NCBI GenBank assembly: GCA_002269645.1
Contig: NIVC01004286.1
Span: 1-51,764, forward strand
DNA: 51,764 bases
Direction of reading: 5' to 3'
Source: Macrostomum lignano
Taxonomy: Eukaryota
This document shows, in pieces, positions 1-37,572 of the stretch (its first letter is position 1; every line of letters starts with the position of its first letter). The notes under the pieces are model-generated. The model was not told where the DNA came from, ran no database searches, and worked only from the letters and a program-made list of their open reading frames with translations. A program made the position numbers and the translations under genes.

Positions 1-3000
1 GCCTGCAACGTATCGTGACCTAACAATGGTGAACCAATTCAAATGGTAGGCCAACTAACTATTAAAGTGAAAGATTGGTAATTTCGAGCCAACAGTTAAG
101 TTTCTGCTAGCGAAAGATCGCACGACAACATCCTGGGCTTTGAGTTCCTAAGAAGTACAGCACATCACTAGATCTCGCCGCCGGGATGCTGTTTTTCAAG
201 GACGGCACTGCGCACCACTTCGCTACACGCGAGCTGAGGCTACCACGTGCAGAATCTACACAGCCGAGAGCACTATGGTGGCCACCACTGTCATCATCAG
301 CCTAAATTAAAATTAAGCTTGCAAAAGACGAGAAGAAAATCAGGGTACACCGCTGTGATCGAGCCGCTAAAACCAGCTTGGCGCAAAGAAGATGTGCAGC
401 ATCTGACGCAGCGCCGGCACTAATATCTATGGCTAATGGACAAGGCACTATGAAATGATTAATCGAGGAACAACATCAATCAGAGTACGAGCGAATGCCC
501 TAGTCGGGATTGCTAGACCAATCAGACTGCCCGAGCTACAGTTCTTCCCGCTGCTGAAGCCAGAGGACTCTGTCAATCAAATTCAAAGACAAAGATCCTG
601 AACTCTTGGATCAAGGAGATTGACATCAGCGAAGATCTGTCCAGTGACCAGCGTGCTCAAGTCATCGAGCTATTGAAGAAGTACAAGACCATCTTCTCTC
701 AGGCCACACGATCTTGGCCGAAACTCATCTGTTCACCCACAGTATTGTGCTACGAAGTAAAGGACACGAATCCGGTGCATCTGCTGACTCGACGGATCCC
801 AGCCGCATCTTCTGCCCAAAGTGGATCAGCTACTCAACGATCTCCTGGCCAAAGGCGTGATTTGACCGAGCTTCTCCAGCTACAACACCCTGCTGGTGAT
901 CATCCCGAAGAAGGACGGCAGCCTGCGGATTGTGCAAGATTTTCGGAGTCTGAATCAGAAGTGCGGATATTTTCTATACCCGATTCCTAACATTCAAGAA
1001 GCATTCGCCAGCCTTGAAGGAAGCCAGCTATTCAGTACGTTCGATTTGAATAGGCGGCTATCAGATTCCTCTGCGTCCGGAAGATCAAGACCTGACTGCC
1101 TTCGCCACGCTGCACCAGCGGACAGTTTGCCTACAATGTTATGCCTATGGGATTAAGTTCAGCTCCAGCCAGCTTCATGCACCTCATGAACACTGTGCTC
1201 AACGGGATTGCCTACAAAAGTGCAATAGCCTACCTGGATGATGTAATCGTCTATTTTTAAGAAGATTTAATGACCATCTACGGCATATGGAGGAAGTATT
1301 CAAGCGAGTCCAAGGCGCTAATCTCAAGTTCAAGGGCAAGAAGTGCCATCTATTTTGGGCAAGTTTAAACTATCTGGGCCATGTTGTAATAAAAGATGGA
1401 ATCAAAAACCGACCCGGCGAAAATCGAAGCTATTCAAACCTGGCCAAGACCAAGAACAGCACGACAACTTAAGAATTTTGTCTGCACGTGCACCTATTAT
1501 GCTAAATTCGTACCTGGCTACGCAGAACTTGCTGCTCCGCTCCACCAGTCTAATTAAAGAGAAGAAAATCCGAAATTTCAACTGTCTATGGGGAAAAGCC
1601 CAGCAAGACGCGTTTGACCAGCTCAAAGCAGCCTTGGCTTCGACATCAGTGCTCGCGTATCTGCAGTTCAGTGAGGACCCGGAAGTTATGTTCATCCTGG
1701 ACATGGATGCTTCTGCAACCAGAATTGGAGCCTGCCTGAGCCAACGCCAAGCTGACGGAGTTGAGCGCCCAATTGGCTATTTCTCCCGGCGACTCAAACC
1801 GGCCAAAGCCCGGTATCCGATCACTAAACAAGAACTATTGGCAGTTGTAGACGGAATGCGACATTTCAATTCTACCTGCTGGCCAAGAAGTTCATCTGCT
1901 GAACCGACCATGCCGCATTAACCTGGATCTTAAGGCGAACCTAGCAAGAAGGAATATTTGGACAATGGCTACAGCGCCTTAGAGAGTTCGAGTTTGAGAT
2001 CCAGCACCGGAAGTCAAGTCAGCATCAGAACGCCGACGGTCTCTCGAGACGGCCCCAGGACGACGCCGAATGCATGGAGGAGGCCCAGCGTGAGGCAGCA
2101 GAGGAGGTTCAAAGTAAGCAGCCAGCCGCAAAAACGGGCGCAGCGGCGCTGAAGGTCCTCGACAGCAGCCATCCTAGCCCTCCGCTGAGCAGGAAGCCGT
2201 CGACCCGCCATAAGCAACGGAAACTGCCGACGAAGCCAAAGGAGTCCAATGGCGAGGCAACGCCGCCAGCAACATCGACAGCCAACAGCAAGCCACTGAC
2301 AGCGCTGCACCCGCCGGCGACGAAGCCGCGGCCATCAGCCAGCCGTTTTCGAGACTCACAGAGGTCGCCCACTAGTTTTAGCAGCACGACATGTTGCCCG
2401 TCAAGGAGCCGCCATCTACTAGCTAAAGGCGACGAGGACAGCGACCACAGTGCAGCCAGCAACGACAGCTGCCAACCCGCTCGAGTCTGGTGTTCAAGAA
2501 ACGAGTGAGATTCAGCATCGACGCCAACAGTTCTGCTGACTTACCCTCATCTGCTGATGAAGCTAATGCCGACAGTGACGCCGACGCGACCGACGAGGAT
2601 TGGCCTTCAAATTCTTCATCGACCCAGCAACCGGCCAGAGTAGCGATTATGTGGAGGGAGCTCCAGACCCCGAACCATGCCGCCACAGCCGAAGCCGCGC
2701 CGACAAATTCGACTAATCCGACTAATCGACGCCAAACTCTGAATCTAACTGATCACATTCCGAGGCCAGTCACCCGCAGGAGCTCCAGACCCATCAGCGA
2801 GCTGACTCTGCCATTGCAATGATGATCAACTTAATTGAAAGTCGACAACCGAAGCCGCCGCTGAATCAGTGATTAAATCTAACAAGAGATGAGCGAAATC
2901 TCTTAGCATTCTATGAGCAATTGGAAGTCCGAGACAACAGACTATTAGTCATCCATCTCGACGATGTTGGCGAGGAGGACAAAGCGAGGATCGTCCTGCC

Positions 3001-4300
3001 GAAGAGCTCGACCCACTGTGTTTGCCGACCTGCATGGCTCGCCTTACTGCGGACACATGGGCTGAGATCTCACCATCGCGAAGGTGCGCGAAAGGTTCTG
3101 GCGACTGGTCCTGGCCAAGGCCGTGTCCGACTATGTCGCTTCCTGCCAGACCTGCACTCAGAGCAAAGGACGGCAACAAATTCTGGCACTTGTACAGTCG
3201 TTCCCGGTCTGCGAAATCTATGGGTGATGTGCAATCGACATCCTGGGCCCCACTGGAGACCCAACAGACCGCGGCAACAAGTACATCCTCACCTACGTTG
3301 ACACGACGTCAAAGTATCCATTCGCTTTCGCCATGAAGAATCAGCGGGCAAGACGATTATCACTCTGCTCCAGGAACAAGTGTTTCCAATCACCGGAATC
3401 CCGGCATGGATTCACTCCGATCAAGGGAAACAGTTCAGCAGGACACGAGTTTCGACATTTCTGCGAAGTCTATGGCATTCGACAGACTACGACGCCGCCA
3501 TACTCGCCCTGGGCCAGCGGACAAGCTGAGTCGTGCAACAAGAACATCAAGAAGGTACTCACGTGTCTCCTCGAAGATCATCAACAGTGGGACAAGATGC
3601 TGCCAGCCGCTCTGACAGCTCTGAGATCAGCTGTCAACCGTACGACGGGATTCTCGCCGCATTACGTCATCTACGGAGTGCCCTACCGGTATCCGATCGA
3701 TAACACCCTAGACCGCCTGGACGATCGCCGGACCTCCCCGAGTATATCGCGAAGCATCAGCGCAGACTGGCCGAGACCGAAAGGATTGTACAACAGCGAT
3801 TGCAAGCTGAGATTCAACGTCGCATAGAGTACTACGAGAACCAACCCAAGCCTGTGGAACTGCAGCCCGGAGACCTGGTCTGCCTGGCCAACCGAAGCTC
3901 GAGCTGGGCGAGCTGCCGAAGTTCCATCGGCCATACAGAAGCTTGTACAAGGTCAACAGAAAGGTCGCAAAGTAGCCTACTGGATCCAGCCTGCAACAGC
4001 CCGACGTGGACGTCCAGCAGAAATACTCGTGCATTGCAATAACATCATCAAGGTGCCGCAGATGATGGCAGATCGACCGCAGGAGCCGCTGCACCCAAAC
4101 TGAGCGGCCAATGCTGCCTTTTGAGTCGAGTGAGGACCCAGCCAATCAGCCCACTCCAGAACAGCCAGCCGCAGCTCAGCCTGACCTGCGCGGCAGCCAA
4201 TTGTTCGAGCCAAGTCTCCGCCATCCGGAAGTGCTGCCTGAAGTCAACCCGGATCTGCCTGACATCGGCATGGAGCTTGAGATCTAAAAGGTATTACCAA
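1..4300 (+). mobile_element. Ty3/Gypsy LTR retrotransposon pol region (protease C-terminus, RT, RNase H, integrase), heavily frameshifted, 5'-truncated by the window edge
   Basis: Fragments across frames: PKKDGSLRIVQDFRSLN (RT); YLDD at 1231-1242; FILDMDASATRIGACLSQ...PIGYFSRRL...YPITKQELLAVV (RNase H); PPYSPWASGQAESCNKNIKKVL...LRSAVNRTTGFSP (integrase core). Order RT-RH-IN is Gypsy-type. LTRs not identified. Confidence 0.93.
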
Positions 4301-6337: not shown

Positions 6338-9159
6338 AATAGCTCTGCCAGGATCTGAGGCTTGCCAGCTCGGCTCGGCCCAGGACCAACTGCCAGGGCG
6401 ATACTGGCGCCGCCAACCAAGGCGGCCACCATTCGGCTGGCAGAGGATGCCACCACAGCAGCGGCTGACTGCCTAGTTTCTTCTGTTGTGTAGGGCCGCC
6501 CCGCGCATGTGGCAGGTGGGATGCCACAGTAATTGTTTGGACTCAGTTTTTTAATAATTTTAAGCGCTATCAAAACTTTAATTTACTGACCCAACCATTG
6601 TCTTTTCACCCCAATTTTTGTCCATCGTCTGCCCAGCTCCCTTTCCCTTCCGTGGCCTGGTTGCGTCCCTTTGCTGTTTTTGTCATCCCTTCATTGAAAT
6701 TTTGTTATCCGCCCTATGTCCCAATGTTTTTGAGCCCCGTCCCGTGAATTTCTGTTTGCCCAGCGTTTGCTTCCAGTACTTGTCAGCCCCCTTTCGGGTA
6801 TTTATTCTGCTAATTGTTGTGCCCAGTTTCCTCATACCTTCCCCTTCCTTCCATTTTTTCTCATCCCTACCGTTCTTTTCTGTTTTCCATTTTCCTCAAC
6901 TAATAAGCTTTGATTCATTAAATTAGTGGTAATATTTTATTGAATTCATTTAGCGCACTGGCGCCACAAGAGCGAATTCATCTTGAGTGTTTAAATAATA
7001 GTAATATTAACTTTATTTAGTGCTCACCTGCTATTATCTTAACTAAGTTACCACAATAAACCGACATCATTAAATTAGCTTTTAATTTCATTTGTTGAGC
7101 CATAGCTTCTCTTGAATCATTTGCCCGTGGGGCGTAAAATAACCAAAGCTCTTATCTTAAAGAAAGCTCTAAGACTTATCCGTTCTGTAATACGTAAATT
7201 ACAGTGGTGGCAGCAACTACCCTACTGGAAGTAATAAGTTCAGCAAATATACGCATTCATTTACGGTGTCTCATCGCTTTGAACGACCGCGCTGCTACAT
7301 GACCGCTCTGCTACGATTACGACTACCCTCCCCCCAGACTTGAGAACCTGGCAGCCGGAGTAAAAGGAGAAAGATTTTTTCTGTTGAGATTCATCTGCAT
7401 GATTTTTCTGGTTTTATTTGTGCAAACTCAACATTCGGCGGCAATTCAAACAAGGAATCCGCCCCACCTCACTGGTGTCAGCAAATTTTCAAAACTGACC
7501 AATTTCCAAGAAAAATCTTCTCCACCCCCACCTCAAAGGTAACTTATTGGCACAACACTGGCAAAGATTTGAGAGTGGGCATGAACTCAAAATTTTTTTG
7601 GCATGCATTTATAATTATTCAATTTTTGTTTGGGCATGCACCTAGCATGATCTAGACTATGGCGCTTAGCTATAACCATAGCTACTCTCCCCCTGACCCT
7701 GAGAAACTCAACAGCTAGAGCTCCCCTTTATTTTGCACCAAAATTTCTGCCCTGCCCTGAAGTTGTTTGTTCAAATTAAGACTAGCACCAATTTGAACAG
7801 CCCAAAAGTTGACAACAAAGCTATAAATAGCCAAGAAACTAAGCTTTAGACTATCTGTCCTCAAAACCCATTAAATCAAAAATAAAAGATTGAACAAAGC
7901 TTAAGATATCTTATTAGTGACTAATTACACCTACAGAATTAAAACAAGATAGTCTATTTCTATTTTGGGAAAGGAATTTTTTTGGCAAAAGATGCTTTAG
8001 CAACAGTGAATTTTTTTTTTATATAAATTTTGGCAATACTCTATAAAATGTGGAATCCACTGCGAAATTGGAATAGAATAGCATAATAAAATGCAGAATC
8101 TGCAATGGAATGGTAAACTGTGGAATCAACTGCGGAGTCTACAACTTAAAATAAAATGCAAAATATTGGAATCAAAAAATATAATTTTAAATACAAAGGC
8201 ACACAATGAATTAAGACCACTTAATACAAATTTGAACATTTAATTCCATAACCTTCGCAGATTGCAAGAGCATTTTTATCTAATCAGTTATAGATAACCA
8301 TAGCATCAATCAATTAAAGTAATGATGTGTTAGGCATTAATTGCAATTGAATATAGTTAGATAGAGTCCCTTGTCTCATTTTTTGAATATTGTAAGTCAG
8401 ACAGTAATAAGACCACTTCAATAATTGTGCTAAGGGTGCTATAAAAATGGCCCTACTGATTCTGCAAATTTAAAACATCAAACTCAATACTACTCTAAGC
8501 CAAAATGATCTCAAACTCTCCTATAGAATGGGGAAAGGCAGAGCTCTATCGCTTGAGTTATGTAGGAAAATCAAGGCTCTGTTAAACAAGAGTTTCCCAG
8601 CGTGCCACAGCCACGCACGCAGCTGGAAAGTTAAAAATGTGCGTCTAGCAGGCCCTCAGGGGTTCCTAGTCATTTCGTCATCTGCCATTTCATCATCTGG
8701 GTGTCTGGGGTGCTCACCTCGACTATGCATATGGTCACTTTGTCATCTTAATTAACATGCACTACCTGAAGAGAGTCATTTCGTCATCCACCAATCATAT
8801 TAGTTCCAACTTCAAGTGAATTATTGTGGCAATTAAATATATTTACTTGGAATCCTAATGATCCCAGTCATTTTGTCATCTCAATTGATAAAACCTGTCG
8901 TTTTTTTTCAAGCTACTTTGCTTCTGGTCACTTTGGGCCTTTTCATATTGCTTGTTCTGGTTCCAGAACCAGAACCAATTTGTGAAGTATAACTTTTTGT
9001 CTCCATAACTAGAGGGAGATACATGCTATAAAGTTTTTATTATTGAATGACAATCGCCAAAAAGAAAATGAAAAATGTGCTAAGGGAGCTTGTTAAGGCA
9101 GTCAAACATTCAACAGAATTAAATAGTTATACTGCTGTTTTTCTTAGAAGATCCAAACT

Positions 9160-12100
9160 CCTTGGGGAAGGCAAGCAGGGTACGGGAAAGGCACGCAGGG
9201 TGCAGGGAAGGCAAGGAGGGTGCGGGGAAGGCAAATAGGGTGAGGGGAAGGCAAGCAGGGTGTGGGGAAGGCAAGCAGCGTGCGGGGAAGGACAGAAGGG
9301 TGTGGGGAAGGCAAGCAGGGTGTGTGGAAGGCAAGCAGGGTGTGGGGAAAGCAAGGAGAGTGTGGGGAAGGCAAGGAGGGTGTGTGGAAGGCAAGCACCC
9401 TACACCCTCCTTGCTTTCCCCATACCCTGCTTGCCTTCCCCACACCCTTCTGTCCTTCCCCGCACGCTGCTTGCCTTCCCCACACCCTGCTTGCCTTCCC
9501 CACACCCTGCTTGCCTTCCCCACACCCTGCTTGCCTTCCCCACACCCTCCTTGCTTTCCCCATACCCTGCTTGCCTTCCCCACACCCTCCTTGCTTTCCC
9601 CGTACCCTGCTTGCCTTCCCCACACCCTGCTTGCCTTCCCCACACCCTTCTGTCCTTCCCCGCATGCTGCTTGCCTTCCACACACCCTGCTTGCCTTCCC
9701 TACACCCTCCTTGCTTTCCCCATACCCTGCTTGCCTTCCCCACACCCTTCTGTCCTTCCCCGCACGCTGCTTGCCTTCCCCACACCCTGCTTGCCTTCCC
9801 TACACCCTGCTTGCCTTCCCCACACCCTGCTTGCCTTCCCCACACCCTGCTTGCCTTCCCCACACCCTGCTTGCCTTCCCCACACCCTGCTTGCCTTCCC
9901 CACACCCTCCTTGCTTTCCCCATACCCTGCTTGCCTTCCCCACACCCTCCTTGCTTTCCCCGTACCCTGCTTGCCTTCCCACACCCTGCTTGCCTTCCCC
10001 ACACCCTTCTGTCCTTCCCCGCACGCTGCTTGCCTTCCACACACCCTGCTTGCCTTCCCCACACCCTGCTTGCCTTCCCTACACCCTCCTTGCTTTCCCC
10101 ATACCCTGCTTGCCTTCCCCACACCCTTCTGTCCTTCCCGCACGCTGCTTGCCTTCCCCACACCCTGCTTGCCTTCCCTACACCCTGCTTGCCTTCCCCA
10201 CCCTCCTTGCTTTCCCCATACCCTGCTTGCCTTCCCCACACCCTCCTTGCTTTCCCCGTACCCTGCTTGCCTTCCTCACACCCTCCTTGCTTTCCCCACA
10301 CCCTGCTTGCCTTCCCCACACCCTTCTGTCCTTCCCCGCACGCTGCTTGCCTTCCCCACACCCTGCTTGCCTTCCCCTCACCCTATTTGCCTTCCCCACA
10401 CCCTCCTTGCTTTCCCCATACCCTGCTTGCCTTCCCCACACCCTCCTTGCTTTCCCCGTACCCTGCTTGCCTTCCCCACACCCTGCTTGCCTTCCCCACA
10501 CCCTTCTGTCCTTCCCCGCACGCTGCTTGCCTTCCCCACACCCTGCTTGCCTTCCCCTCACCCTATTTGCCTTCCCCACACCCTCCTTGCTTTCCCCATA
10601 CCCTGCTTGCCTTCCCCACACCTCCTTGCTTTCCCCGTACCCTGCTTGCCTTCCCCACACCCTGCTTGCCTTCCCCACACCCTTCTGTCCTTCCCCGCAC
10701 GCTGCTTGCCTTCCACACACCCTGCTTGCCTTCCCTACACCCTCCTTGCTTTCCCCATACCCTGCTTGCCTTCCCCACACCCTGCTTGCCTTCCCCACAC
10801 CCTGCTTGCCTTCCCCACACCCTCCTTGCTTTCCCTATACCCTGCTTGCCTTCCCCACACCCTCCTTGCTTTCCCCGTACCCTGCTTGCCTTCCCCACAC
10901 CCTGCTTGCCTTCCCCACACCCTTCTGTCCTTCCCCGCACGCTGCTTGCCTTCCCCACACCCTGCTTGCCTTCTCCGCACCCTGCGTGCCTTCCCCGCAC
11001 CCTGATTGCCTTCCCCACACCCTGCTTGCCTTACCCGCACCCTGCTTGCCTTCCCCACACCCTGCTGTCCTTCCCCACACCCTGCTTGCCTTATCCGCAC
11101 CCTGCTTGCCTTCCCCGCACCCTGCTTGCCTTCCCCACACCCTGCTGTCCTTCCCCACACCTTGCTGTCCTTCCCCACACCCTGCCGGCCTTAACCACGC
11201 CCTGATGGCCTTCTCCACACGTTTGTGGCCTTCCACACAGCCTGCTTCTTTTCACCATACCATACCCTGCTTGCCTTCCCCACACCCTGCTTGCCTTCCC
11301 CACACCCTCCTTGCTTTCCCCACACCCTGCTTGCCTTCCACACACCCTGCTTGCCTTCCCCACACCCTTCTGTCCTTCCCCGCACGCTGCTTGCCTTCCC
11401 CACACCCTGCTTGCCTTCCCCGCACCCTCCTTGCCTTCCTCACACTTTCCTTGCTTTCCCCACACCCTGCTTGCCTTCCCTACACCCTCCTTGCTTTCCC
11501 CATACCCTGCTTGCCTTCCCCACACCCTTCTGTCCTTCCCCGCACGCTGCTTGCCTTCCCCACACCCTGCTTGCCTTCCCCACACCCTGCTTGCCTTCCC
11601 CACACCCTGCTTGCCTTCCCCACACCCTCCTTGCTTTCCCCATACCCTGCTTGCCTTCCCCACACCCTCCTTGCTTTCCCCGTACCCTGCTTGCCTTCCC
11701 CACACCCTGCTTGCCTTCCCCACACCCTTCTGTCCTTCCCCGCACGCTGCTTGCCTTCCACACACCCTGCTTGCCTTCCCTACACCCTCCTTGCTTTCCC
11801 CATACCCTGCTTGCCTTCCCCACACCCTTCTGTCCTTCCCCGCACGCTGCTTGCCTTCCCCACACCCTGCTTGCCTTCCCCACACCCTGCTTGCCTTCCC
11901 CACACCCTGCTTGCCTTCCCCACACCCTGCTTGCATTCCCCACACCCTCCTTGCTTTCCCCATACCCTGCTTGCCTTCCCCACACCCTCCTTGCTTTCCC
12001 CGTACCCTGCTTGCCTTCCCCACACCCTGCTTGCCTTCCCCACACCCTTCTGTCCTTCCCCGCACGCTGCTTGCCTTCCACACACCCTGCTTGCCTTCCC

Positions 12101-13403
12101 CACACCCTGCTTGCCTTCCCTACACCCTCCTTGCTTTCCCCATACCCTGCTTGCCTTCCCCACACCCTTCTGTCCTTCCCCGCACGCTGCTTGCCTTCCC
12201 CACACCCTGCTTGCCTTCCCTACACCCTGCTTGCCTTCCCCACACCCTCCTTGCTTTCCCCATACCCTGCTTGCCTTCTCCACACCCTCCTTGCTTTCCC
12301 CGTACCCTGCTTGCCTTCCTCACACCCTCCTTGCTTTCCCCACACCCTGCTTGCCTTTCCCACACCCTCCTTGCTTTCTCCACACGCTGCTTGCCTTCCA
12401 CACACCCTGCTTGCCTTCCCCGCACCCTGCGTGCCTTCCCCGCACCCTCCTTGCCTTCCCCGCACCCTGCTTGCTTTCCCCACACCCTGCTTGCCTTCCC
12501 CACACCCTTCTGTCCTTCCCCACACCCTCCTTGCTTTCCCCACACCCTGCTTGCCTTCCCCACACCCTTCTGTCCTTCCCCGCACGCTGCTTGCATTCCC
12601 TACACCCTGCTTGCCTTCCCCGCACCCTCCTTGCCTTCCCCGCACCCTCCTTGCTTTCCCCACACCCTGATTGTCTTCCCTGCACCCTGCTTGCCTTCCC
12701 CGCACCCTGCTTGCCTTCCCCGTACCCTGCTTGCCTTCCGCACACCCTCCTTGCTTTCCCCACACCCTGCTTGCCTTCCCCACACCCTCCTTGCTTTCTC
12801 CACACCCTGCTTGCCTTCCACACACCCTGCTTGCCTTCCCCACACCCTGCTTGCCTTCCCCGCACCCTCCTTGCCTTCCCCGCACCCTCCTTGCTTTCCC
12901 CACACCCTGCTTGCCTTCCCCACACTCTTCTGTCCTTCCCCACACCCTGCTTGCCTTCCCCGCACCCTGCTTGCCTTCCCCACACCCTGCTGTCCTTCAC
13001 CGCACCCTCCTTGCTTTCCCCACACCCTGCTTGCCTTCCCCACACCCTCCTTGCTTTTCCCACACCCTGCTTGCCTTCCACACACCCTGCTTGCCTTCCA
13101 CACACCCTCCTTGCCTTCCCACACTCTCCTTGCTTTCCCCACACCCTGCTTGCCTTCCACACACCCTGCTTGCCTTCCCCACACCCTTCTGTCCTTCCCA
13201 GCACGCTGCTTGCCTTCCCCACACCCTGATTGCCTTCCCCGCACCCTCCTTGCCTTCCCCACACCCTTTTTGCTTTCCCCACCGCCTGCTTGCCTTCCCC
13301 ACACCCTCCTTGCTTTCCCCACACCCTGCTTGCCTTCCACACACCCTGCTTGCCTTCCCCACACCCTTCTGTCCTTCCCCGCACGCTGCTTGCCTTCCCC
13401 ACC
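9160..13403. repeat. 20-bp satellite (GGGGAAGGCAAGCAGGGTGT family): short G-rich arm 9163-9397, then long C-rich arm 9398-13403
   Basis: Period 20 with recurring variant units (GACAGAAGGG, GCAAGGAGGG, GCAAGCAGCG) in 100-200-bp blocks. Orientation flips abruptly at ~9397. Confidence 0.97.
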
Positions 13404-14805
13404 CCAAACTGGCTGGTCGGTTTAATGACACTCGGTTGTCATTCGCTGTACCGGCGTTTTACAATTACGGGCACGTTCTGCGCTGTCAACTGACATATGG
13501 AATTCGCTCTATTGCCTCTGTTGGCTTGACCGATGGTGAAAGTGTAGAGAGAGTCTGGGCGGATCTGCGATGTTTCGGCCCTCAGGTTAAAGAGATGGCG
13601 CATGACAATTGGCGCGAATTTCTCAATTATCTTGCCGAAAGCATGAATTTTCACTGCATTACAAATATCAGTAAGGTTATTATATAGGCTGATTAATTAT
13701 CTGTATTAATATTATTCCATAGAGTATTGAATTGATACCTTAATGCATGGTTGTTGAAATTTTGCGTGAAAAATACGGCAAGCTTAGGCTACACATGCTT
13801 TAAGCTTTAAGCTTAAACAATTTAGGCTACACACTTTTTTCTTTTTAGCTACCTGGCTGGGTCACTGCCGAACGGTCCAAAAGAAGGCAGTGCAACAATT
13901 CGAAGCTGACTTTGCTGAATTTCAAGCGCGCCACAATGTGCCCGGTTAGTCCTGACTCACTCCTCATAATTAATCTGTCAATCAAATATTAATAATTTAT
14001 TACATTAAATATTTGCTGTATCTCCATTAGTGACTCTTGAAGAATTCCTTCAAGAGGCAGCCAATTGGAGGCAAGAGCTGATCAATGTGCTATCATCTGC
14101 GCGTGAGTCATCTTCTTCCAAGTCGGAGACTATCCGGAAACTATTCGGCATTGCTGCGAGCGTCAGTATTTACTCAAACATGCGGCAACAGAGCGTGGTC
14201 AACGTATGAACAGGCTACTTCGAGTAGCGACAGACAAGCTGCTCCGCAAGACGAAGACAGTCTGTTCAAAGTTTAACAGCAAAAATCCAACGGACCTACT
14301 TGATTGGAATAACTTCATTTCGACAGACGCCTCTGGCTTCCAGCAGCTTATAAATGGAGGCACTTTCGGTGTCGAGGTCCTAACTCACAAGGTGCAAGCC
14401 ATAAAACTTCGCGATCTGTACCTTCGATGCTCGGAAGAATCGCTCCTGGTGACTTCAGAGGCAAAGCGTGTTTATAATTTTCTTTCTGCTGCCGTTCTAA
14501 CCGTGAGCTCAGAGTTGCAAGCCGCCCGAGATAGCAACAGCCCACTCGCTGCGGTATTATCTCTTCGGCTAAGTGGTATATTGCGCTTACGCCATGCTCA
14601 TGAAGCAGCTTTCCCGTTCGGAGCTGTGGCAGAGACACAAGTGGATTCGGAGTCGGGCGATTCTCATGACAGTGAATCGGACAATTCGCAAGCTTTATTG
14701 TCTGACAGTGACGATGACTCTGAGTTCAACTCGGAAGGTCAACTGGAACAGGGAAAGGCCGTCAGGGTGTGGGGAACGCCAGCAGGGTATAGTAAAGGCC
14801 AATAG
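13404..14805 (+). pseudogene. KDZ (Kyakuja-Dileera-Zisupton) transposase, 3' half, three exons (13404-13670, 13849-13944, 14031-14805); 5' half missing, one frameshift near 14160
   Basis: FAVPAFYNYGHVLRCQLTYGIRSIASVGLTDGESVERVWADL matches the remembered KDZ core (PKFHxxGHxxxCQ...GxTDGEGxERxWS). Two phase-1 GT-AG introns splice into an open frame. Downstream helical region RQYLLKHA...GQR...LRCSEESLLVTSEAKRVYNF. Confidence 0.8.
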
Positions 14806-16200
14806 GGCATGGGAACAAGTGCTAGGGCACGGTAAAAATCATCAAGATATGGTGATGATATCTTAACAGGGTTGGGTAAGGCCATCAGGGTGTGGGGAAG
14901 GCAAGCAGGGTGCGGGGAAGGCAAGCAGGGTGTGGGGAAGGACAGAAGGGTGTGGGGAAGGCAAGCAGGATGTGGGGAAAGCAAGGAGGGTGTGGGGAAG
15001 GCAAGCAGGGTACGGGGAAGGCAAGCAGGGTGCGGGGAAGGCAAGCAGGGTGCGGGGAAGGCAATCAGGGTGTGGGGAAGGCAAGCAGGGTGCGGGGAAG
15101 GCACGCAGGGTGCGGGGAAGGCAAGTAGGGTGTGGGGAAGGCAAGCAGGGTGTGGGGAAGGCAAGCAGCGTGCGGGGAAGGACAGAAGGGCGTGGGGAAG
15201 GCAAGCAGGGTGTGTGGAAGGCAAGCAGGGTGTGGGGAAAGCAAGCAGCGTGCGGGGAAGGCAAGGAGGGTGCGGGGAAGGCAATCAGGGTGTGGGGAAG
15301 GCAAGCAGGGTGCGGGGAAGGCACGCAGGGTGCGGGGAAGGCAAGGAGGGTGCGGGGAAGGCAAGCAGGTTGTGGGGAAGGCAAGCAGCGTGCGGGGAAG
15401 GACAGAAGGGTGTGGGGAAGGCAAGCAGGGTGTGTGGAAGGCAAGCAGGGTGTGGGGAAAGCAAGCAGGGTGTAGGGAAGGCAAGCAGGGTGTGGGGAAG
15501 GCAAGCAGCGTGCGGGGAAAGCAAGGAGGGTGTGGGGAAGGCAAGCAGGGTATGGGGAAAGCAAGGAGGGTGTAGGGAAGGCAAGCAGGGTGTGGGGAAG
15601 GCAAGCAGCGTGCGGGGAAGGACAGAAGGGTGTGGGGAAGGCAAGCAGGGTGTGTGGAAGGCAAGCAAGGTGTGGGGAAAGCAAGGAGGGTGTGGGGAAG
15701 GCAAGCAGGGTATGGGGAAAGCAAGGAGGGTGCGGGGAAGGACAGCAGGGTGTGGGGAAGGCAAGCAAGGTATGGGAAAGGGTAGCAGGGACAGTGAGTA
15801 GGGAAGGCCAGCAGGGTATAGAAAAGGCCACCAGGATGTGGGGAAGGCCTGCATTGGTAAGAAAGGGTAGCAGGGTATGGAAAGCCACTAGGGTATAGTG
15901 AAGGGCAATAAGATATAGAGAAAGCTAGCAGGGTATAGACAAAGGTGGCAAGGTATAGTGAAAAACAGCAAGGTATAGAAAAGGCCACTAGGATATGGGG
16001 AAGGTCTGCATAGGTAGGGCCTAAGAAAGGGTAGCAGCATATAGGAAGGCCAGTGGGTATAAGGAAGGCTAACAGAATGTGGAAAAGGCTAGCAGGATAT
16101 AGGAAAAGCCAGTAGGGTATAAGAAGGCCAGCATGATATAATGAAGGCTAGCAGGAAATAGTAAAAAGCAGCAGGGTATAGAGAAGGCTAGCAGGGTATG
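14750..16200 (+). repeat. Same 20-bp satellite, G-rich orientation, with degenerate edges (14750-14880 and 15780-16200)
   Basis: GGGGAAGGCAAGCAGGGTGT tandem units that decay gradually at both ends. Confidence 0.95.
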
Positions 16201-17050
16201 TGTGGGGAAGAAAAAGGTTAAAAAACAAAAAATAGAACCTTTTAAATACTAAATACTAATTGGCTTAGCCTATAACATAAAATAGTAGAATAGAACCAAA
16301 TTTAATAATAAACTTTAAAATATAAATAATAACTCCATTTATGGAATTTTATGCTAGCAGCTAGTTATACTAGGTATATATATAATAGGCTATAGTCTAT
16401 TAGAACCCTAAATTATGCCTGCTCAATATATCAGTTATAGCTTTACTGGATAGTTTCTCTCCTAAACTCAGTGTTCAAAAAGTAGAATATATAGGCCTAG
16501 CCTTAGATTAGTCACACAGTTATTGAGTTACAAAATTGTGCATAGGCCTAGCTACAAACTGAGCGCCATCCTATTCCTGTCACGCTTTAAAGTTCACTTA
16601 AGTCAGGTCGAGTCTTATTGTTCTCTTGTTCTAATATTAATTCGCTATTTCAGTGATGTGGAAATAATAAACAGCTAGAGCTACATAAAATAATGTCAAA
16701 TGTTTCGATACTTGTAACTTTAGAAGTCATCCTAATTATCTAGCATTACTGTACTAGAAAATAGTAGTAAAATCGCTACTTTGCATAGTGAATTATATAA
16801 AAATGAGCAGAAACGGCTGTTCAAATTTGTGCCATTTTGGGTCCTAAGTGCGCATATAAAAGGCAATCAATAGCATGCTACCGTATCATATAGCATGACA
16901 CGGACCGCCTTATAGGCGGTTTTTGCCGTGTTCTATACCGCCTAATGTGTATATACGGCTGTTCTGGAATTGGTAATATGAAAAGCCTCTTTGTCATCGG
17001 ATATGACGAAATGGAATATGACGACGTGACCACGTGACCCTAGACTCTAT

Positions 17051-17310
17051 GGGCCTTTTCATATTGCTTGTTCTGGTTCCAGAACCAGAACCAATTTGTG
17101 AAGTATAACTTTTTGTCTCCATAACTAGACAGAGATACGTACTATATAGTTTTTATTATTGAATGACAATGGCCAAGAAGAAAGTGAAAAATTGTGCTAA
17201 GTTAGGTTGTTAAGGCAGTCAAATATTAACAGAGTTTAATAGTTATACTGCTGTTTTTCTTGGAATTCCGAACCGATTCTGGTTCTGGAATTGGTAATAT
17301 GAAAAGGCTC
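17051..17310. mobile_element. PIF/Harbinger-like MITE copy 2, intact, 260 bp
   Basis: TIRs GGGCCTTTTCATATT and AATATGAAAAGGCTC; 3-bp TSD TAT at 17048-17050 and 17311-17313; clear similarity to 8935-9159. Internal dyad TTCTGGTTC-CA-GAACCAGAA. Confidence 0.9.
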
Positions 17311-17588
17311 TATCTCGGGTACGTAATGTTTCAACTGTAATGATCTTGAATATGGTAGTAAATTACCCCGAGATTACTTGTGCCCAGAAAGATTCAAAAA
17401 GTTTATATTTTTTAAACCAAATATACCAAATCTTTCATATCTAAAAGGCATTTTTTCTGCCTAATTAAATTTTGAGTACGCCTGGCTTTCTTAATTTTTT
17501 CTAAAAATTTCGCGCTTTTTTAATTTAGCGGTAAATTTGAATAGCGCAAGGCGAGCTATGGACCGCGTGGCGGAGGCTAATTATTATT

Positions 17589-20215: not shown

Positions 20216-20749
20216 CTGTTTGATCAGAAATTTTCCCGTGACGGTACATGCATCATGGCTAAGAAATTGCTCAATGCTAAAGGCATTAAATATTCGAAAA
20301 ACATGCTTTTTTGCAAAGGTCAAGCAAACTTTTCGACTTGAAATGCATTGTAAGAATGCTAGAGAAAAAACTGACTGGTTGAATTCTGATTCTGAAATAG
20401 ATTGCATCATAACTGAATTGTAACTCCGACTTGAATTGAAAATGCAGTGTGGAAGCATAGCACCAGACTTGATTTAAATTTCGTAACCATATTGTTAACT
20501 GATACTGACTGACTGAGAAACTGATTATGACATAACTGCTTCGTGTGATTTACTCTATGCTTGGATTTTAAAGTGTTGAATTATATAAGTGCAAAATTTG
20601 ATGTTATCAAAACGATGAGAGCTAGCCTAGAGGTAAACAGACTGAACTGCTAAATGCAGCGATGATGGTTCAAATTTTCATAGAGTATAATTTTTTTAAT
20701 TAAAGCTTTTCACCGTCAGGAAAACTAAAATACTTTTAAGAAGAAGCGT

Positions 20750-21560
20750 CGTGTAAAAATCATAGAAGCGCCATGTAAAAAATCATAGAAGCGTCATGTA
20801 AAAAATCATAGAAGCATCATGTAAACAATCATAGAAGCGTCATGTAAACAATCATAGAAGCGTCATGTAAACAATCATAGAAGCGTCATTTAAAAATCAC
20901 AGATGCGTCATTTAAAAAATCATAGAAGCGTCATGTAAACAATCATAGAAGCGTCATGTAAAAAATCAGAGAAGCGTCATGTAAACAATCATAGAAGCGT
21001 CATGTAAACAATCATAGAAGCGTCATGTAAAAAATCATAGAAGCGTCATGTAAAAAATTGTAGAAGTGTCATTTAAAAATCATAGAAGCATTATTTAAAA
21101 AATCATAGAAGCGTCATGTAAAAAATCGTAGAAGCGTCATGTAAACAATCATAGAAGCGTTATTTAAAAAAATTATAGAAGTGTCATGTAAACAATCATA
21201 GAAGCGTCATGTAAACAATCATAGAAGCGTCATGCAAACAATCATAGAAGCGTCATGTAAACAATCATAGAAGTGTCATGTAAACAATCATAGAAGCATC
21301 ATGTAAACAATCATAGAAGCATCATGTAAACAATCGTAGAAGCGTCGTGTAAACAATCATAGAAGCATCATGTAAAAAATTGTAGAAGCGTCATTTAAAA
21401 ATGATAGAAGCGTCATGTAAACAATCATAGAAGCATCATAGAAGCGTCAAGAAAAAATCATAGAAGCCTAATTTAAAAACTAATGAGTGTCATTTAAAAA
21501 ATTAAGAAGCATCATGGTACAATAAAAGAAGTGTCATGTCAGACATGAAGGGTGTCATGT
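20750..21560. repeat. 23-bp satellite ACAATCATAGAAGCGTCATGTAA (~30 copies)
   Basis: Period 23 read directly (20821 to 20844). Confidence 0.95.
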
Positions 21561-22915: not shown

Positions 22916-23335
22916 ATGAAGCCAATGCTGAGTTTCATCTTGCGCCCGTATCTGGAGCTGCGTGGCACTGCACCCAACCTGGAACGCTATTTCTGCTTCA
23001 AGTGTGCACAGCTGTTTGCTGAGCCGCCTTGCCAGACCGCAGATGGCCAGCGTGTCTGCGCTGCGTGCTGCTGCGCTGCGGGAATCCCAGTTGCCATGCG
23101 CAAGGATCGAGCCTTGTGGCGGGACCTGCGCCCGCTGCTCTGGGTTCGCTGCCCTGGCAACGGTTGTCAAGCGGTTCACTTGCTGGCTGAGATTGATCAA
23201 GCCGGTGGCCTGGCCGCCTGTCCGGCTTGTCGGTTTCGCCTGCGCATCGACAGTGCCAATGAGCTTGCGCACCTGCTGAGCGCCTGTCTGAGCATGTGCG
23301 ACCTTGTCGATCAATTCAGTGACCTAGCCGCCTGA
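22916..23335 (+). CDS. Small TRAF-type RING/zinc-finger-like protein (139 aa), no TRAF-C domain
   Basis: RYFCFKCAQLFAEPPCQTADGQRVCAAC...RKDRALWRDL...VRCPGNGC resembles the TRAF N-terminus (CxxC..L..PxQTxCGHRFCxxC...KD....REI..L.VxCxN.GC). GC-rich island in AT-rich DNA. Confidence 0.55.
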   Translation: MKPMLSFILRPYLELRGTAPNLERYFCFKCAQLFAEPPCQTADGQRVCAACCCAAGIPVAMRKDRALWRDLRPLLWVRCPGNGCQAVHLLAEIDQAGGLAACPACRFRLRIDSANELAHLLSACLSMCDLVDQFSDLAA

Positions 23336-23630: not shown

Positions 23631-24364
23631 GTGCAAGAACTGATAAAGTACTCGCATTGTTGCGAATGTGCACAGTATCTCAGTATCTCAGATTAGACAA
23701 ATAATCTGAGATGACAACTATGCCGAATTTTTATCGTTTTACCGAAAATAGAGATATATTTTGAAGATAGCAATTATAATCAGCATTAACAATTAACATT
23801 CCATCTGTAATTTTACATTTTATAATTATTATCAGAGTATTTTTATTACTGAGAATCTCCGCCTCCTGCCAGCGCTCTTTTCCCCGGTGCAATTGCCGCG
23901 TTTTTAGCTTATCAATTTGTTTTAATTCTAGAAAAATATTATTTGTTTATTAATAATTTGCTTGCTCAGTTCACAAAGTGTGCCAGAATCACGTGCTATA
24001 CACTAATGTACACTAACGCGTACCTGTTGTTGCATAATTACAGAAGAAATAAATAAATAATGCATGCTCCGAATTTAAAGCAATAAATCTGTTAATTTCA
24101 TCTCTTTTGGCTTTTTATTCATATATTAGCAACAAGCAAAGCTTACTTTTTATCAGCTGACACAATCGTATAAATATTGAAAACTGCCTTTGTGAAGTCT
24201 AACTTGAAAAATTCAACTCTTAGACCGAGAACAAATCTCAAACAATGAACCTTTCAGAGTCCAAATTTACAACTCAAAAATTTATATATTAGAGGAATCA
24301 AACCGATCGATTTGGAATTCTTTGGCTTGCAAAAGCAGCAGACCAGGAAATCTGGGAGCAGCAA

Positions 24365-26108
24365 ATGGGCCGGAAGGATGCGATGGCGGCGCAGCTGCCT
24401 GTGGATCAGTACCGAAAGAAGATCGGTGCGTCTTTTGATGTCTGTGCTGCTGGGTGGCCACTGGGTGTCATGGGGCAGTCTGGGGCCACTGCTGATGGTC
24501 ATGGGGCAGTCTAGGGTCACTGCTGATGGTCATTGGACAGTCTGGTCACTGCTGATGATCATTGGGCAGTCTGGGTGGGTGGTCATGGCCCCATGGGGTA
24601 GCGGTGGAACACAGGGGGGGGGGGTCATGACTCCATGGGGTAGCGATGGAACACTAAGGGGGGGGGGTCATGGCCCCATGGGGTAGCGTTGGAACACAGG
24701 GGGGTCATGGCCCATGGGGTAGCGGTGGAACACAGGGGGGTCATGACATCATGGGGTAGCGGTGGAACACAGGGGGTCATGGCCCCATGGGGTAGCGGTG
24801 AAGCACAGGGGGTGTCATGGCCCCCATGGGGTAGCGGTGGAACACTGAGGGGGGGGGGGGTCATGGGATAGCGGTGGAACACAGGGGGTCATGGCCCCAT
24901 GGGATAGCGGTGGAACACAGGGGGGTCATGACATCATGGGGTAGCGGTGGAACACAGGGGGGGTCATGGCCCCATGGGGTAGCGGTGGAACACAGGGGGG
25001 TCATGACATCATGGGGTAGCGGTGGAACACAGGGGGGTCATGACATCATGGGGTAGCGGTGGAACACAGGGGGTCATGGCCCCATGGGGTAGCGGTGGAA
25101 CACAGGGGGGTCATGACATCATGGGGTAGCGGTGGAACACAGGGGGGGTCATGGCCCCATGGGGTAGCGGTGGAACACAGGGGGGTCATGACATCATGGG
25201 GTAGCGGTGGAACACAGGGGGGTCATGACATCATGGGGTAGCGGTGGAACACAGGGGGTCATGGCCCCATGGGGTAGCGGTGAAGCACAGGGGGTGTCAT
25301 GGCCCCCATGGGGTAGCGGTGGAACACTGAGGGGGGGGGGGGGTCATGGGATAGCGGTGGAACACAGGGGGTCATGGCCCCATGGGGTAGCGGTGGAACA
25401 CAGGGGGGTCATGACATCATGGGGTAGCGGTGGAACACAGGGGGTCATGGCCCCATGGGGTAGCGGTGAAGCACAGGGGGTGTCATGGCCCCCATGGGGT
25501 AGCGGTGGAACACTGAGGGGGGGGGGTCATGGGATAGCGGTGGAACACAGGGGGTCATGGCCCCATGGGGTAGCGGTGGAACACTGAGGGGGGGGGGTCA
25601 TGGGATAGCGGTGGAACACAGGGGGTCATGGCCCCATGGGATAGCGGTGGAACACAGGGGGGGGGGTCATCGCCCCATGGGATAGCGGTGGAACACTGAG
25701 GGGGGGTCATGGCCCCATGGGGTAGCGGTGAAACACAAATGGGGTCATGACCCCATTCGGTAGCGGTGACCCCACTAAGCTGATAAGCCTGCTGCCATCC
25801 CCCTGTCAACTGCAGGCCAGAGCCAGCAGAAGCGGGCCAGCAAGAGCATGAAGGAGCAGCGATCAGCTGATGAGCAGCTCAAATCGCGGTCGCTTGTCTC
25901 GGTGAGTCATAAAAAAGCTCCGGATGATCAGTTAAAAATTTCCTGAACAAAAGTGTAAATAAAATCCATCGTTCTCCAACATCAGGACGTGCTGCTGCCT
26001 CTGGCCGGTCTTCTGCTTTTGCTAGTCGGTCTCTACTGCTCTCTATACTACTATATAGATCGGCAGGGCAGTAGTGCGAAAGGCGCATCTTCAACGTCGC
26101 AACAGTGA
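24365..26108 (+). CDS. TRIQK: Triple QxxK/R motif-containing protein, 89 aa; join(24365-24425, 25816-25901, 25986-26108)
   Basis: Splices to MGRKDAMAAQLPVDQYRKKIGQSQQKRASKSMKEQRSADEQLKSRSLVSDVLLPLAGLLLLLVGLYCSLYYYIDRQGSSAKGASSTSQQ*. Matches the remembered TRIQK N-terminus MGRKDA...LPVDQYRKQIG plus a C-terminal TM helix. GT-AG introns have consistent phases (1, 0). Confidence 0.9.
24460..25770. repeat. ~32-37-bp G-rich satellite filling TRIQK intron 1 (CCCCATGGGGTAGCGGTGGAACACAGGGGGTCATGG)
   Basis: About 35 units carrying the palindromes CCCCATGGGG or TCATGA. Confidence 0.95.
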
Positions 26109-26589
26109 TATTTTGATGAAATTTGAGAAAACTTCATTGCCTTTTTCGTTGTTTAAAAATCAAATCAATAATTTTATTGACCTAAGACTTTTTGTACTTT
26201 TAATATTTATGATTTTTTATGGATAATATAGGCACGGAGTGGGTGGCATTAAATTCTGATTGCGGTCCAGGTTCCTTCAAGGGGGGATGGTTGGTTGCAG
26301 ATTGATTGTCAAATCCCCTTTGTGTGCCAAATTTCTTGTGTCCTGTGTACATACTGATTTTCAGAATTGTTTTACAAACTTGTGATTTTTAATTAGAATT
26401 TCATTACTAAATACAATTCTTGATATTAATTTCATTTTCATAGCCTGAAAATGCTTTTTTAGTGCAATTTTGATCACATTTTAACACCTGGTGTGAATCT
26501 GGCACACGCGTTCGGCTTCCAGCTTCTCGACTTAAAACTTACTTTTTAAGTTGGAAATTTGTTGGATGGGACTTCACCAGGATTACCGT

Positions 26590-36300: not shown

Positions 36301-37572
36301 AGGTGAGAACAGTACAGACATCATGCGGATGGTCACGTAGGCTGGCAGGTGGGAACAGTACATACATCATGCGGATGGTCACGTAGGCTGGCAGGTGAGA
36401 ACAGTACAGACATCATGCGGATAGTCACGTAGGTTGGCAGGTGAGAACAGTACATACATCATGCGAATAGTCACGTAGGCTGGCAGGTGAGAACAGTACA
36501 GACATCATGCGGATGGTCACGTAGGCTGGCAGGTGAGAACAGTACAGACATCATGCGGATGGTCACGTAGGCTGGCAGGTGAGAACAGTACATACATCAT
36601 GCGGATGGTCACGTAGGCTGGCAGGTGAGAACAGTACAGACATCATGCGGATGGTCACGTAGGCTGGCAGGTGAGAACAGTACAGACATCATGCGGATGG
36701 TCACGTAGGTTGGCAGGTGAGAACAGTACAGACATCATGCGAATAGTCACGTAGGCTGGCAGGTGAGAACAGTACAGACATCATGCGGATGGTCACGTAG
36801 GCTGGAAGGTGAGAACAGTACATACATCATGCGAATAGTCACGTAGGCTGGCAGGTGAGAACAGTACAGACATCATGCGAATAGTCACGTAGGCTGGCAG
36901 CTGAGAACAGTACAGACATCATGCGGATGGCCACGTAGGCTGGCAGGTGAGAACAGTACAGACATCATGCGGATGGTCACGTAGGTTGGCAGGTGAGAAC
37001 AGTACAGACATCATGCGGATGGTCACGTAGGCTGGCAGGTGAGAACAGTACAGACATCATGCGGATGGTCACGTAGGCTGGCAGCTGAGAACAGTACAGA
37101 CATCATGCGGATGGTCACATAGGTTGGCAGGTGAGAACAGTACAGACATCATGCGGATGGTCACGTAGGTTGGCAGGTGAGAACAGTACAGACATCATGC
37201 GGATGGTCACGTAGGTTGGCAGGTGAGAACAGTACAGACATCATGCGAATAGTCACGTAGGCTGGCAGGTGAGAACAGTACAGACATCATGCGGATGGTC
37301 ACGTAGGTTGGCAGGTGAGAACAGTACAGACATCATGCGGATGGTCACGTAGGCTGGCAGGTGAGAACAGACATTATGCCTCTTGAAAGCGCTGATTGGT
37401 TAATTCACAAATGCTATCAGGTGAGTCAATGAAGCAAGTCTATTATTAGTACACCTTGGGCCTGCTAATTATGTAACGATAAGAGAGAAAATAAAAGCCT
37501 GCATTGCTTCCTTTGCATGAGAACTGCTGGGCCGGCAGCACCCCCTCCCCAGCTCCGCATTGATCTCAACAA

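Follow-up and report, generated by a model that had tools for sequence, protein, structure and literature searches.

The question raised by contig NIVC01004286.1 of the flatworm Macrostomum lignano (assembly GCA_002269645.1) is whether the transposase-like coding sequence that starts at position 13406 is part of a working gene, and whether the tandem repeats on both sides of it belong to the same element. The whole stretch of DNA analysed, referred to here as the window, comprises 51,764 nucleotides (51.7 kb). The sequence 13406-14751 on the + strand is very probably a non-functional relic of a DNA-transposon transposase of the KDZ (Kyakuja-Dileera-Zisupton) superfamily in M. lignano. The coding homology starts at 13406 (KLAGRF), ends near 14751 and represents the last ~361 of ~790 residues, or ~45% of the protein; from 13406 onwards the strand encodes KLAGRFNDTRLSFAVPAFYNYGHVLRCQ...GLTDGESVERVW. 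A preliminary description, made from the letters of the sequence, had recognized a KDZ-like catalytic region in an invertebrate genome, and both the catalytic region and the invertebrate host are borne out.

The KDZ identity was established with two independent profiles. A search of the spliced peptide against the Pfam KDZ model (PF18758), as the preliminary description had proposed, gave 54.7 bits (E=1.5e-14), and exon 1 alone gave 58.6 bits (E=9.3e-16), both above the cutoff of 26.6. The match covers only profile positions 142/143-217 of 217. The second profile (length 893) was constructed from 26 animal and fungal KDZ proteins, with the window sequence left out. In the six frames of the window it matches exactly two open reading frames (ORFs), namely exon 1 (E=7.5e-31, profile positions 445-529 of 893) and the last exon (E=1e-21, positions 665-866). 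In tblastn searches with M. lignano KDZ proteins as queries, exon 1 showed 67% identity to P0002, and the last exon showed 54% identity to P0001 in the +1 frame from 14146. KDZ conservation reaches ~300 residues past the C-terminal edge of the Pfam model in the 26-sequence alignment (residues ~530-790 of the M. lignano protein P0151), with examples such as CERxFL...GQ and R674-x2-E677-E678 in 23 of the 26 animal and fungal proteins.

The coding sequence is divided into three exons by two phase-1 introns of the GT-AG type, all on the + strand. Exon 1 (13406-13670), supported by the Pfam KDZ model and our own profile, is truncated and covers the final third of the KDZ domain (KLAGRF...ITNI). It is followed by intron 1 (13671-13848, GTAAGG...TTTTTAG), exon 2 (13849-13944, 32 codons beginning with TTWLGHCRTVQKK...) and intron 2 (13945-14030, GTTAGT...CCATTAG), and both introns carry polypyrimidine tracts. 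The last exon (14031-14751), identified by tblastn, profile (positions 651-863) and alignment, encodes a helical C-terminal region and an acidic tail, as had been noted in the preliminary description.

The same gene structure is found in a paralogue. P0151 is the GenBank-annotated protein PAA55188.1 of M. lignano (locus L003), the gene of which contains introns of 80 and 110 bp at 12812-12891 and 13000-13109, respectively. These introns interrupt the same aligned codons as introns 1 and 2 of the window (after ...NNI/S and ...ID/G, slashes marking the breaks) in the same phase, and they enclose a 36-codon exon that aligns with the 32-codon exon 2. Exon 2 aligns with SVWLFSREKVAKQ... of P0151 and with a W-L motif of other relatives, and a Logan contig (L004) contains an unbroken ORF of 748 amino acids that spans both exon junctions. 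Splicing of the KDZ gene, predicted earlier with the same two introns, is supported by this intron homology. After repair of the frame, the spliced model comprises 361 codons with zero stops and scores 195.3 bits against our own profile. Skipping exon 2 reduces the score to 180.0 bits, so that exon 2 is worth 15 bits, whereas the model with an unrepaired frame scores 123.0 bits and contains 9 stops. The frameshift is due to a single missing base after 14154 (GGC ATT GC/TGC GAG CGT CAG), at a site where the relatives read A/S-C-E/D-R; the loss had been placed close by, at ~14160.

The residues that are fully or nearly invariant in the 26 relatives, a set that spans flatworm to mushroom, are D311, C350, C380-R-H382, G395-E396, Y422-D423, C426, H445, H449, C453, D469-G-E471, E474-R475 and R495 (P0151 numbering). 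By analogy with other eukaryotic cut-and-paste transposases (PMC12730594, introduction), D311, D423 and E471-474 may constitute a DDE-type metal-binding triad, with the H-x3-H-x3-C motif as a putative zinc insert. When the KDZ profile was searched against solved structures, nothing matched the catalytic core, and the N-terminus gave only weak ZZ/B-box zinc-finger matches. Exon 1 of the window spans the H-x3-H site, the Cys and the DGE..ER block, and the second His and the Cys of H-x3-H-x3-C are kept. H445, the first His of PAFHxYGH, is His in 26/26 relatives and Tyr in the window copy (PAFYNYGH), a substitution that had already been pointed out. R495 is Arg in 24/26 relatives and Trp in the window copy. 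The DGE..ER block is the only one of the conserved acidic positions that the copy retains, since D311 and Y-D423 lie upstream of the truncation.

The truncation itself is located at the edge of a tandem array with a 20-bp unit. An ORF at 12671-13687 runs from repeat-encoded low-complexity sequence into exon 1, which agrees with the earlier remark that the KDZ region lies at the end of a repeat-derived ORF. The window copy begins 30 codons inside the homologous exon of P0151, after D423 and directly against the array. The junction is sharp (...ccttccccacccc/aaactggct), and no AG acceptor is present at 13403-13405. The N-terminal half of the KDZ protein was not detected on either strand of the window by tblastn with two M. 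lignano KDZ proteins, and the CxC-type zinc N-terminus was likewise absent from the window in tblastn and own-profile searches. At the other end, degenerate repeat monomers make up the final ~18 codons ahead of the stop at 14803-14805.

The copy cannot make a transposase: it is truncated and frameshifted, only one of the three conserved acidic positions is left, the zinc modules are gone, and the His to Tyr and Arg to Trp replacements are present. The preliminary description had spoken of a transposase; what is present is a 5'-truncated relic that derives from a member of the KDZ superfamily and is not itself a complete member. The ancestral gene would have encoded a protein of ~790 residues, spliced from about eight exons, with a B-box/ZZ-like finger and a CxC zinc module (presumably DNA-binding) at the N-terminus, followed by the KDZ catalytic core, the helical C-terminal region and the acidic tail. 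Only the last two and a half exons of such a gene have survived.

Some observations weigh against a simple relic. The 361 codons contain no stop once the single frameshift is set aside, and the splice signals of both introns are canonical; the copy is therefore either young or still under constraint. A sequencing error could, in principle, account for the frameshift, and the nearest family members in the protein databases reach only 67% (exon 1) or 49% (overall) identity. A rival reading is that the fragment is part of a live gene, either a transposase with its upstream exons beyond the array and the array serving as an intron, or an exapted host protein in which repeat-encoded low-complexity sequence is fused to the KDZ C-terminus. 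The reading frame 12671-13687 does pass from the array into exon 1, the only stops are those caused by the frameshift and the splice signals are undamaged. A live gene is nevertheless extremely improbable, as neither strand of the window encodes a KDZ N-terminus or a CxC module, the break falls inside a homologous exon at a place that lacks an acceptor, and the frameshift is accompanied by Tyr and Trp at positions that are invariant or nearly so among the relatives. Moreover, the exact product of the ORF 14206-14805 is not among the called genes in public assemblies, including the Logan run assemblies. The open frame outside the frameshift and the undamaged splice signals suggest that the relic was disabled fairly recently.

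The relatives of the fragment were collected with a query alignment of the window pieces with P0001 and P0002. An exhaustive search of representative proteins yielded 1074 proteins at E<=0.001. The top matches are all from M. lignano and include the multi-copy groups Mlig004599g2-g29 and Mlig001681g6-g20. They are followed by proteins of Pecten, Branchiostoma, Lytechinus, Patiria, Apostichopus, Astyanax, Sanderia, Tubulanus and Littorina, and then by far weaker matches (E ~1e-10 to 1e-13) to fungal proteins of Agaricomycetes and Tilletia. No similarity of the fragment to the fetched KDZ loci was found at the DNA level, and the source lineage of the fragment is not represented by an annotated intact gene. 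Exact-protein look-ups of P0001 and P0002 returned no encoding contig.

Full-length relatives of 750-890 residues contain a B-box/ZZ-like finger, a CxC1/CxC2 cluster, the KDZ core, the helical C-terminal region and the acidic tail. In a Pfam scan the CxC cluster was present in the scallop, lancelet, urchin and nemertean proteins; among the M. lignano paralogues it was sub-threshold in one and unmatched in the others. None of the 16 full-length relatives scanned contains SWIM or CxC4. The animal proteins among them contain B-box and CxC1/CxC2 without Ulp1, whereas the fungal ones contain CxC1 with or without Ulp1. The label "Zisupton-type" given in the preliminary description is not supported by these architectures, and the accurate label, as judged from the domain content of the relatives, is KDZ of the B-box/CxC1-2 type.

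The closest known systems are the M. lignano paralogues (A0A1I8GH28 and A0A1I8HMS9; PAA55188.1, PAA87534.1 and PAA89046.1; Mlig004599 and Mlig001681), which belong to the same host and protein family. They share the helical C-terminal region and the acidic tail with the window copy (identity 49% overall and 67% in exon 1), and PAA55188.1 also shares both intron positions and phases. The paralogues are full or near-full genes of 700-830 amino acids with a zinc N-terminus and a complete core, whereas the window copy is truncated and frameshifted.

The KDZ group was defined from fungal elements and fish Zisupton, according to the account of Iyer 2014 and Bohne 2012 in PMC12730594. Fish Zisupton (Bohne et al. 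2012, as summarized in PMC12730594 and PMC9297572) and the Zisupton elements of the nematode Pristionchus pacificus likewise contain PF18758, are multi-exonic and occur in animals. In passages of PMC9297572 and PMC12730594, a multi-exon gene structure is described as unusual for DNA transposons. Multi-exon Zisupton/KDZ elements are known in nematodes, lancelets, sea stars and mussels (PMC9297572), so that introns in an invertebrate KDZ gene have precedents. The earlier view of a poorly characterised family was overstated in this respect, as the M. lignano paralogues, too, are present in UniProt and GenBank with KDZ or CxC labels.

The Zisupton proteins of P. pacificus are much longer (1166-1367 amino acids, 18-31 exons; PMC9297572). 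Canonical Zisupton consists of KDZ, CxC4 and SWIM (bioRxiv 10.1101/2024.08.15.608186), whereas the relatives of the window copy contain B-box and CxC1/CxC2 and no SWIM. Zisupton produces 8-bp target-site duplications, and Kyakuja produces 7-bp duplications and has 5'-CA...TG-3' ends without inverted repeats (PMC12730594). Neither the 8-bp duplication nor the terminal inverted repeats of Zisupton are visible at the window copy. The fungal Kyakuja/Dileera elements (Kojima 2025, PMC12730594; Cryptococcus KDZ1-3, bioRxiv 10.1101/2024.08.15.608186) share the invariant residues of the KDZ core and contain a CxC1-type N-terminal cluster, as do the relatives of the window copy, and they are large elements with extra genes. 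Kyakuja starts with 5'-CA and the Mlig001681 element of M. lignano with 5'-CAG. Among the fungal elements the extra genes are TET/JBP or Ulp1; the flatworm relatives instead have a gene for a zinc-finger (ZnF) and SET-domain protein (ZnF-SET).

The fragment is enclosed in a block of 7.8 kb (9163-16957) that consists of inverted units, a forward array, the KDZ fragment, a reverse array and an AT-rich tail. Tandem Repeats Finder, motif counts and direct reading of the sequence gave the following order. At the outer end of the left array, 9163-9397 is a short inverted block of ~12 units of the 20-bp repeat in the G-rich orientation (TGGGGAAGGCAAGCAGGGTG). The C-rich orientation (CCCCACACCCTGCTTGCCTT) follows with ~200 units at 9398-13402; this array adjoins the truncated KDZ exon and supplies the repeat-derived ORF. 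To the right of the fragment, about six degenerate 20-bp monomers occupy 14752-14866 and include the stop of the mechanical ORF at 14803-14805. The right arm (14867-16199) is composed of the same repeat in the opposite, G-rich orientation, with 46 good units to 15790 that then decay to 16199. The block ends with a unique AT-rich tail of 0.76 kb (16200-16957) for which no match was obtained in the fetched loci. The arms did not arise by a recent mirror-image inverted duplication, as the best 200-bp matches between them are 90-95.5% identical and scattered.

The block splits a ~260-bp miniature inverted-repeat transposable element (MITE) with the terminal inverted repeats GCCTTTTCATATT...AATATGAAAAGGC, and it therefore arrived there as an insertion. 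The left part of the MITE (8934-9158, +; MITE positions 1 to ~228) is 92% identical to a second, intact copy of ~260 bp at 17050-17310, which lies 50 bp beyond the split one. It stops where the array begins, and the 3' end (GTTCTGGAATTGGTAATATGAAAAGCC..., last ~30 bp, 16958-16995, +), a direct repeat with 17282-17316, resumes ~8 bp after the stop point in the alignment. The left part is also 90% identical to the M. lignano loci L001/L002, where the MITE copies sit in an intron of a KDZ gene. The block would have come in as one mobile unit and would then have been deleted internally. As a point against this account, the alignment of the split MITE revealed no target-site duplication at the block ends; the insertion may thus be a non-canonical transposition, or its left end may have been eroded.

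Mis-joining of repeat-rich long reads could also produce an abrupt junction and inverted arms. Near-identical 20-bp units in both orientations are hard to assemble, and the window differs from the GenBank contig over 26-49.7 kb by ~3% and in array lengths. Such an assembly artefact is very unlikely all the same, because the MITE halves fit across the block within ~8 bp, which is not expected of a random mis-join, and because the right end of the fragment passes gradually into degenerate monomers, a transition typical of natural array edges.

Whether the 20-bp array is the element's own was approached through the intact KDZ loci of M. lignano. Three Mlig001681 loci (L010, L011 and L013) with unrelated left flanks become identical at 5'-CAGTTTATGGCCGCCCGTTAGCGG (L010:1767, L011:1315, L013:1738). 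From this terminus, the order is ~260 bp, ~3 inverted units, a 5.6-kb array, 2.7 kb, the KDZ gene, the ZnF-SET gene and an array with a 387-bp period. The 5.6-kb array contains 285 forward units of GGCGCCGATTTGAGCTTTCC (L011, 1705-7322) and begins ~370-440 bp inside the terminus; higher-order periods of 138, 158 and 276 bp are seen in it. The element is larger than 21 kb, a lower bound taken from the left terminus to the limit of the contig or of the 10-kb flank.

A second family, Mlig004599, has the 20-bp unit of Mlig001681 upstream and a homologous ZnF-SET gene downstream, and its KDZ DNA is otherwise unalignable with that of Mlig001681. In M. lignano GCA_002269645.1, the KDZ and SET genes are located at 10001-12791 and 14863-16865, respectively, in L006-L008, and at 10001-12515 and 13238-14236 in L011/L012. 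The gene directly downstream of KDZ in these two diverged families encodes a C2H2-like finger and a SET domain (PF00856). The KDZ-SET copies are >99% identical over at least 11.5 kb, and L010 lacks the SET gene owing to a 1.8-kb deletion. The ZnF-SET gene may be a chromatin-modifying cargo of an animal KDZ transposon. The preliminary description had suggested TET/JBP neighbours; no TET/JBP gene is annotated in the fetched intact M. lignano loci, where the downstream gene is ZnF-SET, and the flanks in the window, which was not scanned with a TET/JBP model, are repeat arrays. No convincing terminal inverted repeats were found around the L003 paralogue.

In foldback-type and subterminal-repeat transposons, such as Drosophila FB and CACTA/En-Spm, short tandem units form opposite arms around a central segment. 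The window likewise has opposed arms of tandem units around transposase sequence, and the likeness is a structural one only. Unlike those of foldback elements, the arms in the window are not recognisable as true termini, are unequal (4.2 vs 1.3 kb), lack a target-site duplication and enclose a different transposase family.

It is possible, though rather doubtful, that the 20-bp repeat is the element's own array, and that the 7.8-kb block derives by internal deletion from a giant KDZ transposon and resembles a foldback element, its two sides being formed by inverted repeat arms; such a block might still be mobilised in trans. The three Mlig001681 loci with unrelated left flanks share the sharp terminus 5'-CAGTTTATGGCCGCC, which lies outside the array and hence places the array inside the element. 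The 20-bp unit of Mlig001681 also occurs upstream of the second KDZ family in spite of otherwise unalignable DNA. The layout in the window is alike, with 12 inverted units and then 200 forward units 5' of the KDZ fragment, and the entire block is inserted in a MITE. Two inverted array pairs are present at L001, another KDZ locus. On the other hand, the unit in the window has no sequence relation to those of the other families and is missing from all other fetched loci, and the two arms are not mirror images. No inverted copy of the array was detected within 10 kb downstream of intact elements, including that in L011. The block has neither a target-site duplication nor a recognisable terminus, and its right end does not significantly resemble the M. 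lignano family terminus. A match of the right end to the reverse complement of the L010 terminus was specifically ruled out, with a local alignment score of 19.0 against a shuffle mean of 18.3. The adjacency of array and fragment alone is weak evidence, since the window contains ~25 tandem arrays and the genome is saturated with them.

The wider proposal is put forward tentatively, namely that the array is the subterminal array of a giant (>20 kb) flatworm KDZ transposon with family-specific 20-bp units, the intact relatives of which carry a ZnF-SET passenger. The 20-bp units could possibly be transposase-binding sites. With similar reserve, the repeat in the window may be regarded as the array of the element, and the left junction as the product of a single internal deletion. 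The inverted array pairs at L001, a third KDZ family, have 28-bp and 40-bp units, are located at 10518-11584 / 12041-12812 and 23812-24503 / 25639-26521, and flank short spacers near the KDZ gene; foldback-like pairs may be common in the M. lignano genome.

The remainder of the window contains host genes, decayed retrotransposons and further arrays. Over 26-49.7 kb, pieces of the window are 92-98% identical to NIVC01001795.1 (the two longest ~97%), and the two sequences represent another haplotype, subgenome or line of M. lignano with respect to each other. Exons of the mitochondrial DNA polymerase gamma gene (POLG; DNApol_Exo, DNA_pol_A) were identified on the + strand at 29688-29924, 30569-31048, 43893-44606 and 47437-47868. 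The introns of POLG are many kb long and packed with different tandem arrays. The best database protein shows 49% identity to one exon, and the GenBank contig has a model of 1151 amino acids. An EF-hand gene with an EF-hand_7 pair (38290-39297, -), which we take by eye to be neuronal-calcium-sensor/KChIP-like, is nested antisense in a POLG intron, and its ORF is 100% identical to M. lignano BOX15_Mlig010014g1. A Cys-rich ORF of 139 amino acids with CxxC pairs and no Pfam match (22916-23335, +; start MKPMLSFILRPYLELRG...) lies upstream of a TRIQK-like gene annotated on the GenBank contig.

A decayed long terminal repeat (LTR) retrotransposon pol ORF at 1343-1918 matches the RT_RNaseH_2 and RT_RNaseH Pfam models. 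A decayed LTR pol fragment is found at 2921-3827, in which the ORF 3333-3824 appears integrase-like by eye and has no Pfam match. The ~25 minisatellites in the 51.7 kb are unrelated arrays with units of 12-154 bp and up to 200 copies, also in introns; examples include 31682-34455, 35222-37370 and 24577-25768. The GC skew falls to -1.0 over 32-34 kb. A 23-bp repeat (AGAAGCGTCATGTAAACAATCAT, 30 copies, 20742-21439) is also present in L006 (1-264, ~82% identity) and belongs to a dispersed M. lignano family.

Taken alone, the fragment is an ordinary decayed transposon copy of a superfamily already represented in Pfam and in the M. lignano protein set. Its value is that of a pointer to the large KDZ elements of this flatworm, of which the 5'-CAG terminus, the 5.6-kb internal array of 20-bp units and the ZnF-SET gene downstream in two diverged families deserve attention. 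No description of KDZ elements in Macrostomum or in flatworms was found in the literature searched, and the co-mention of Macrostomum and Zisupton there concerns Tc1/mariner elements. Chromatin-modifier cargo is known from TET/JBP genes in fungi and from SET genes in oomycete Harbinger and MuDR elements (PMC12730594). Should the SET gene prove to be genuine cargo, the carriage of chromatin-modifying enzymes on DNA transposons would extend to animals and to KDZ elements, and the ZnF-SET (histone methyltransferase-like) passenger would be the animal counterpart of the TET/JBP cargo in fungal KDZ elements. KDZ transposons, provided that the arrays are part of them, would give rise to kb-scale repeat arrays in the M. 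lignano genome and would be one source of the dense tandem arrays that hamper its assembly.

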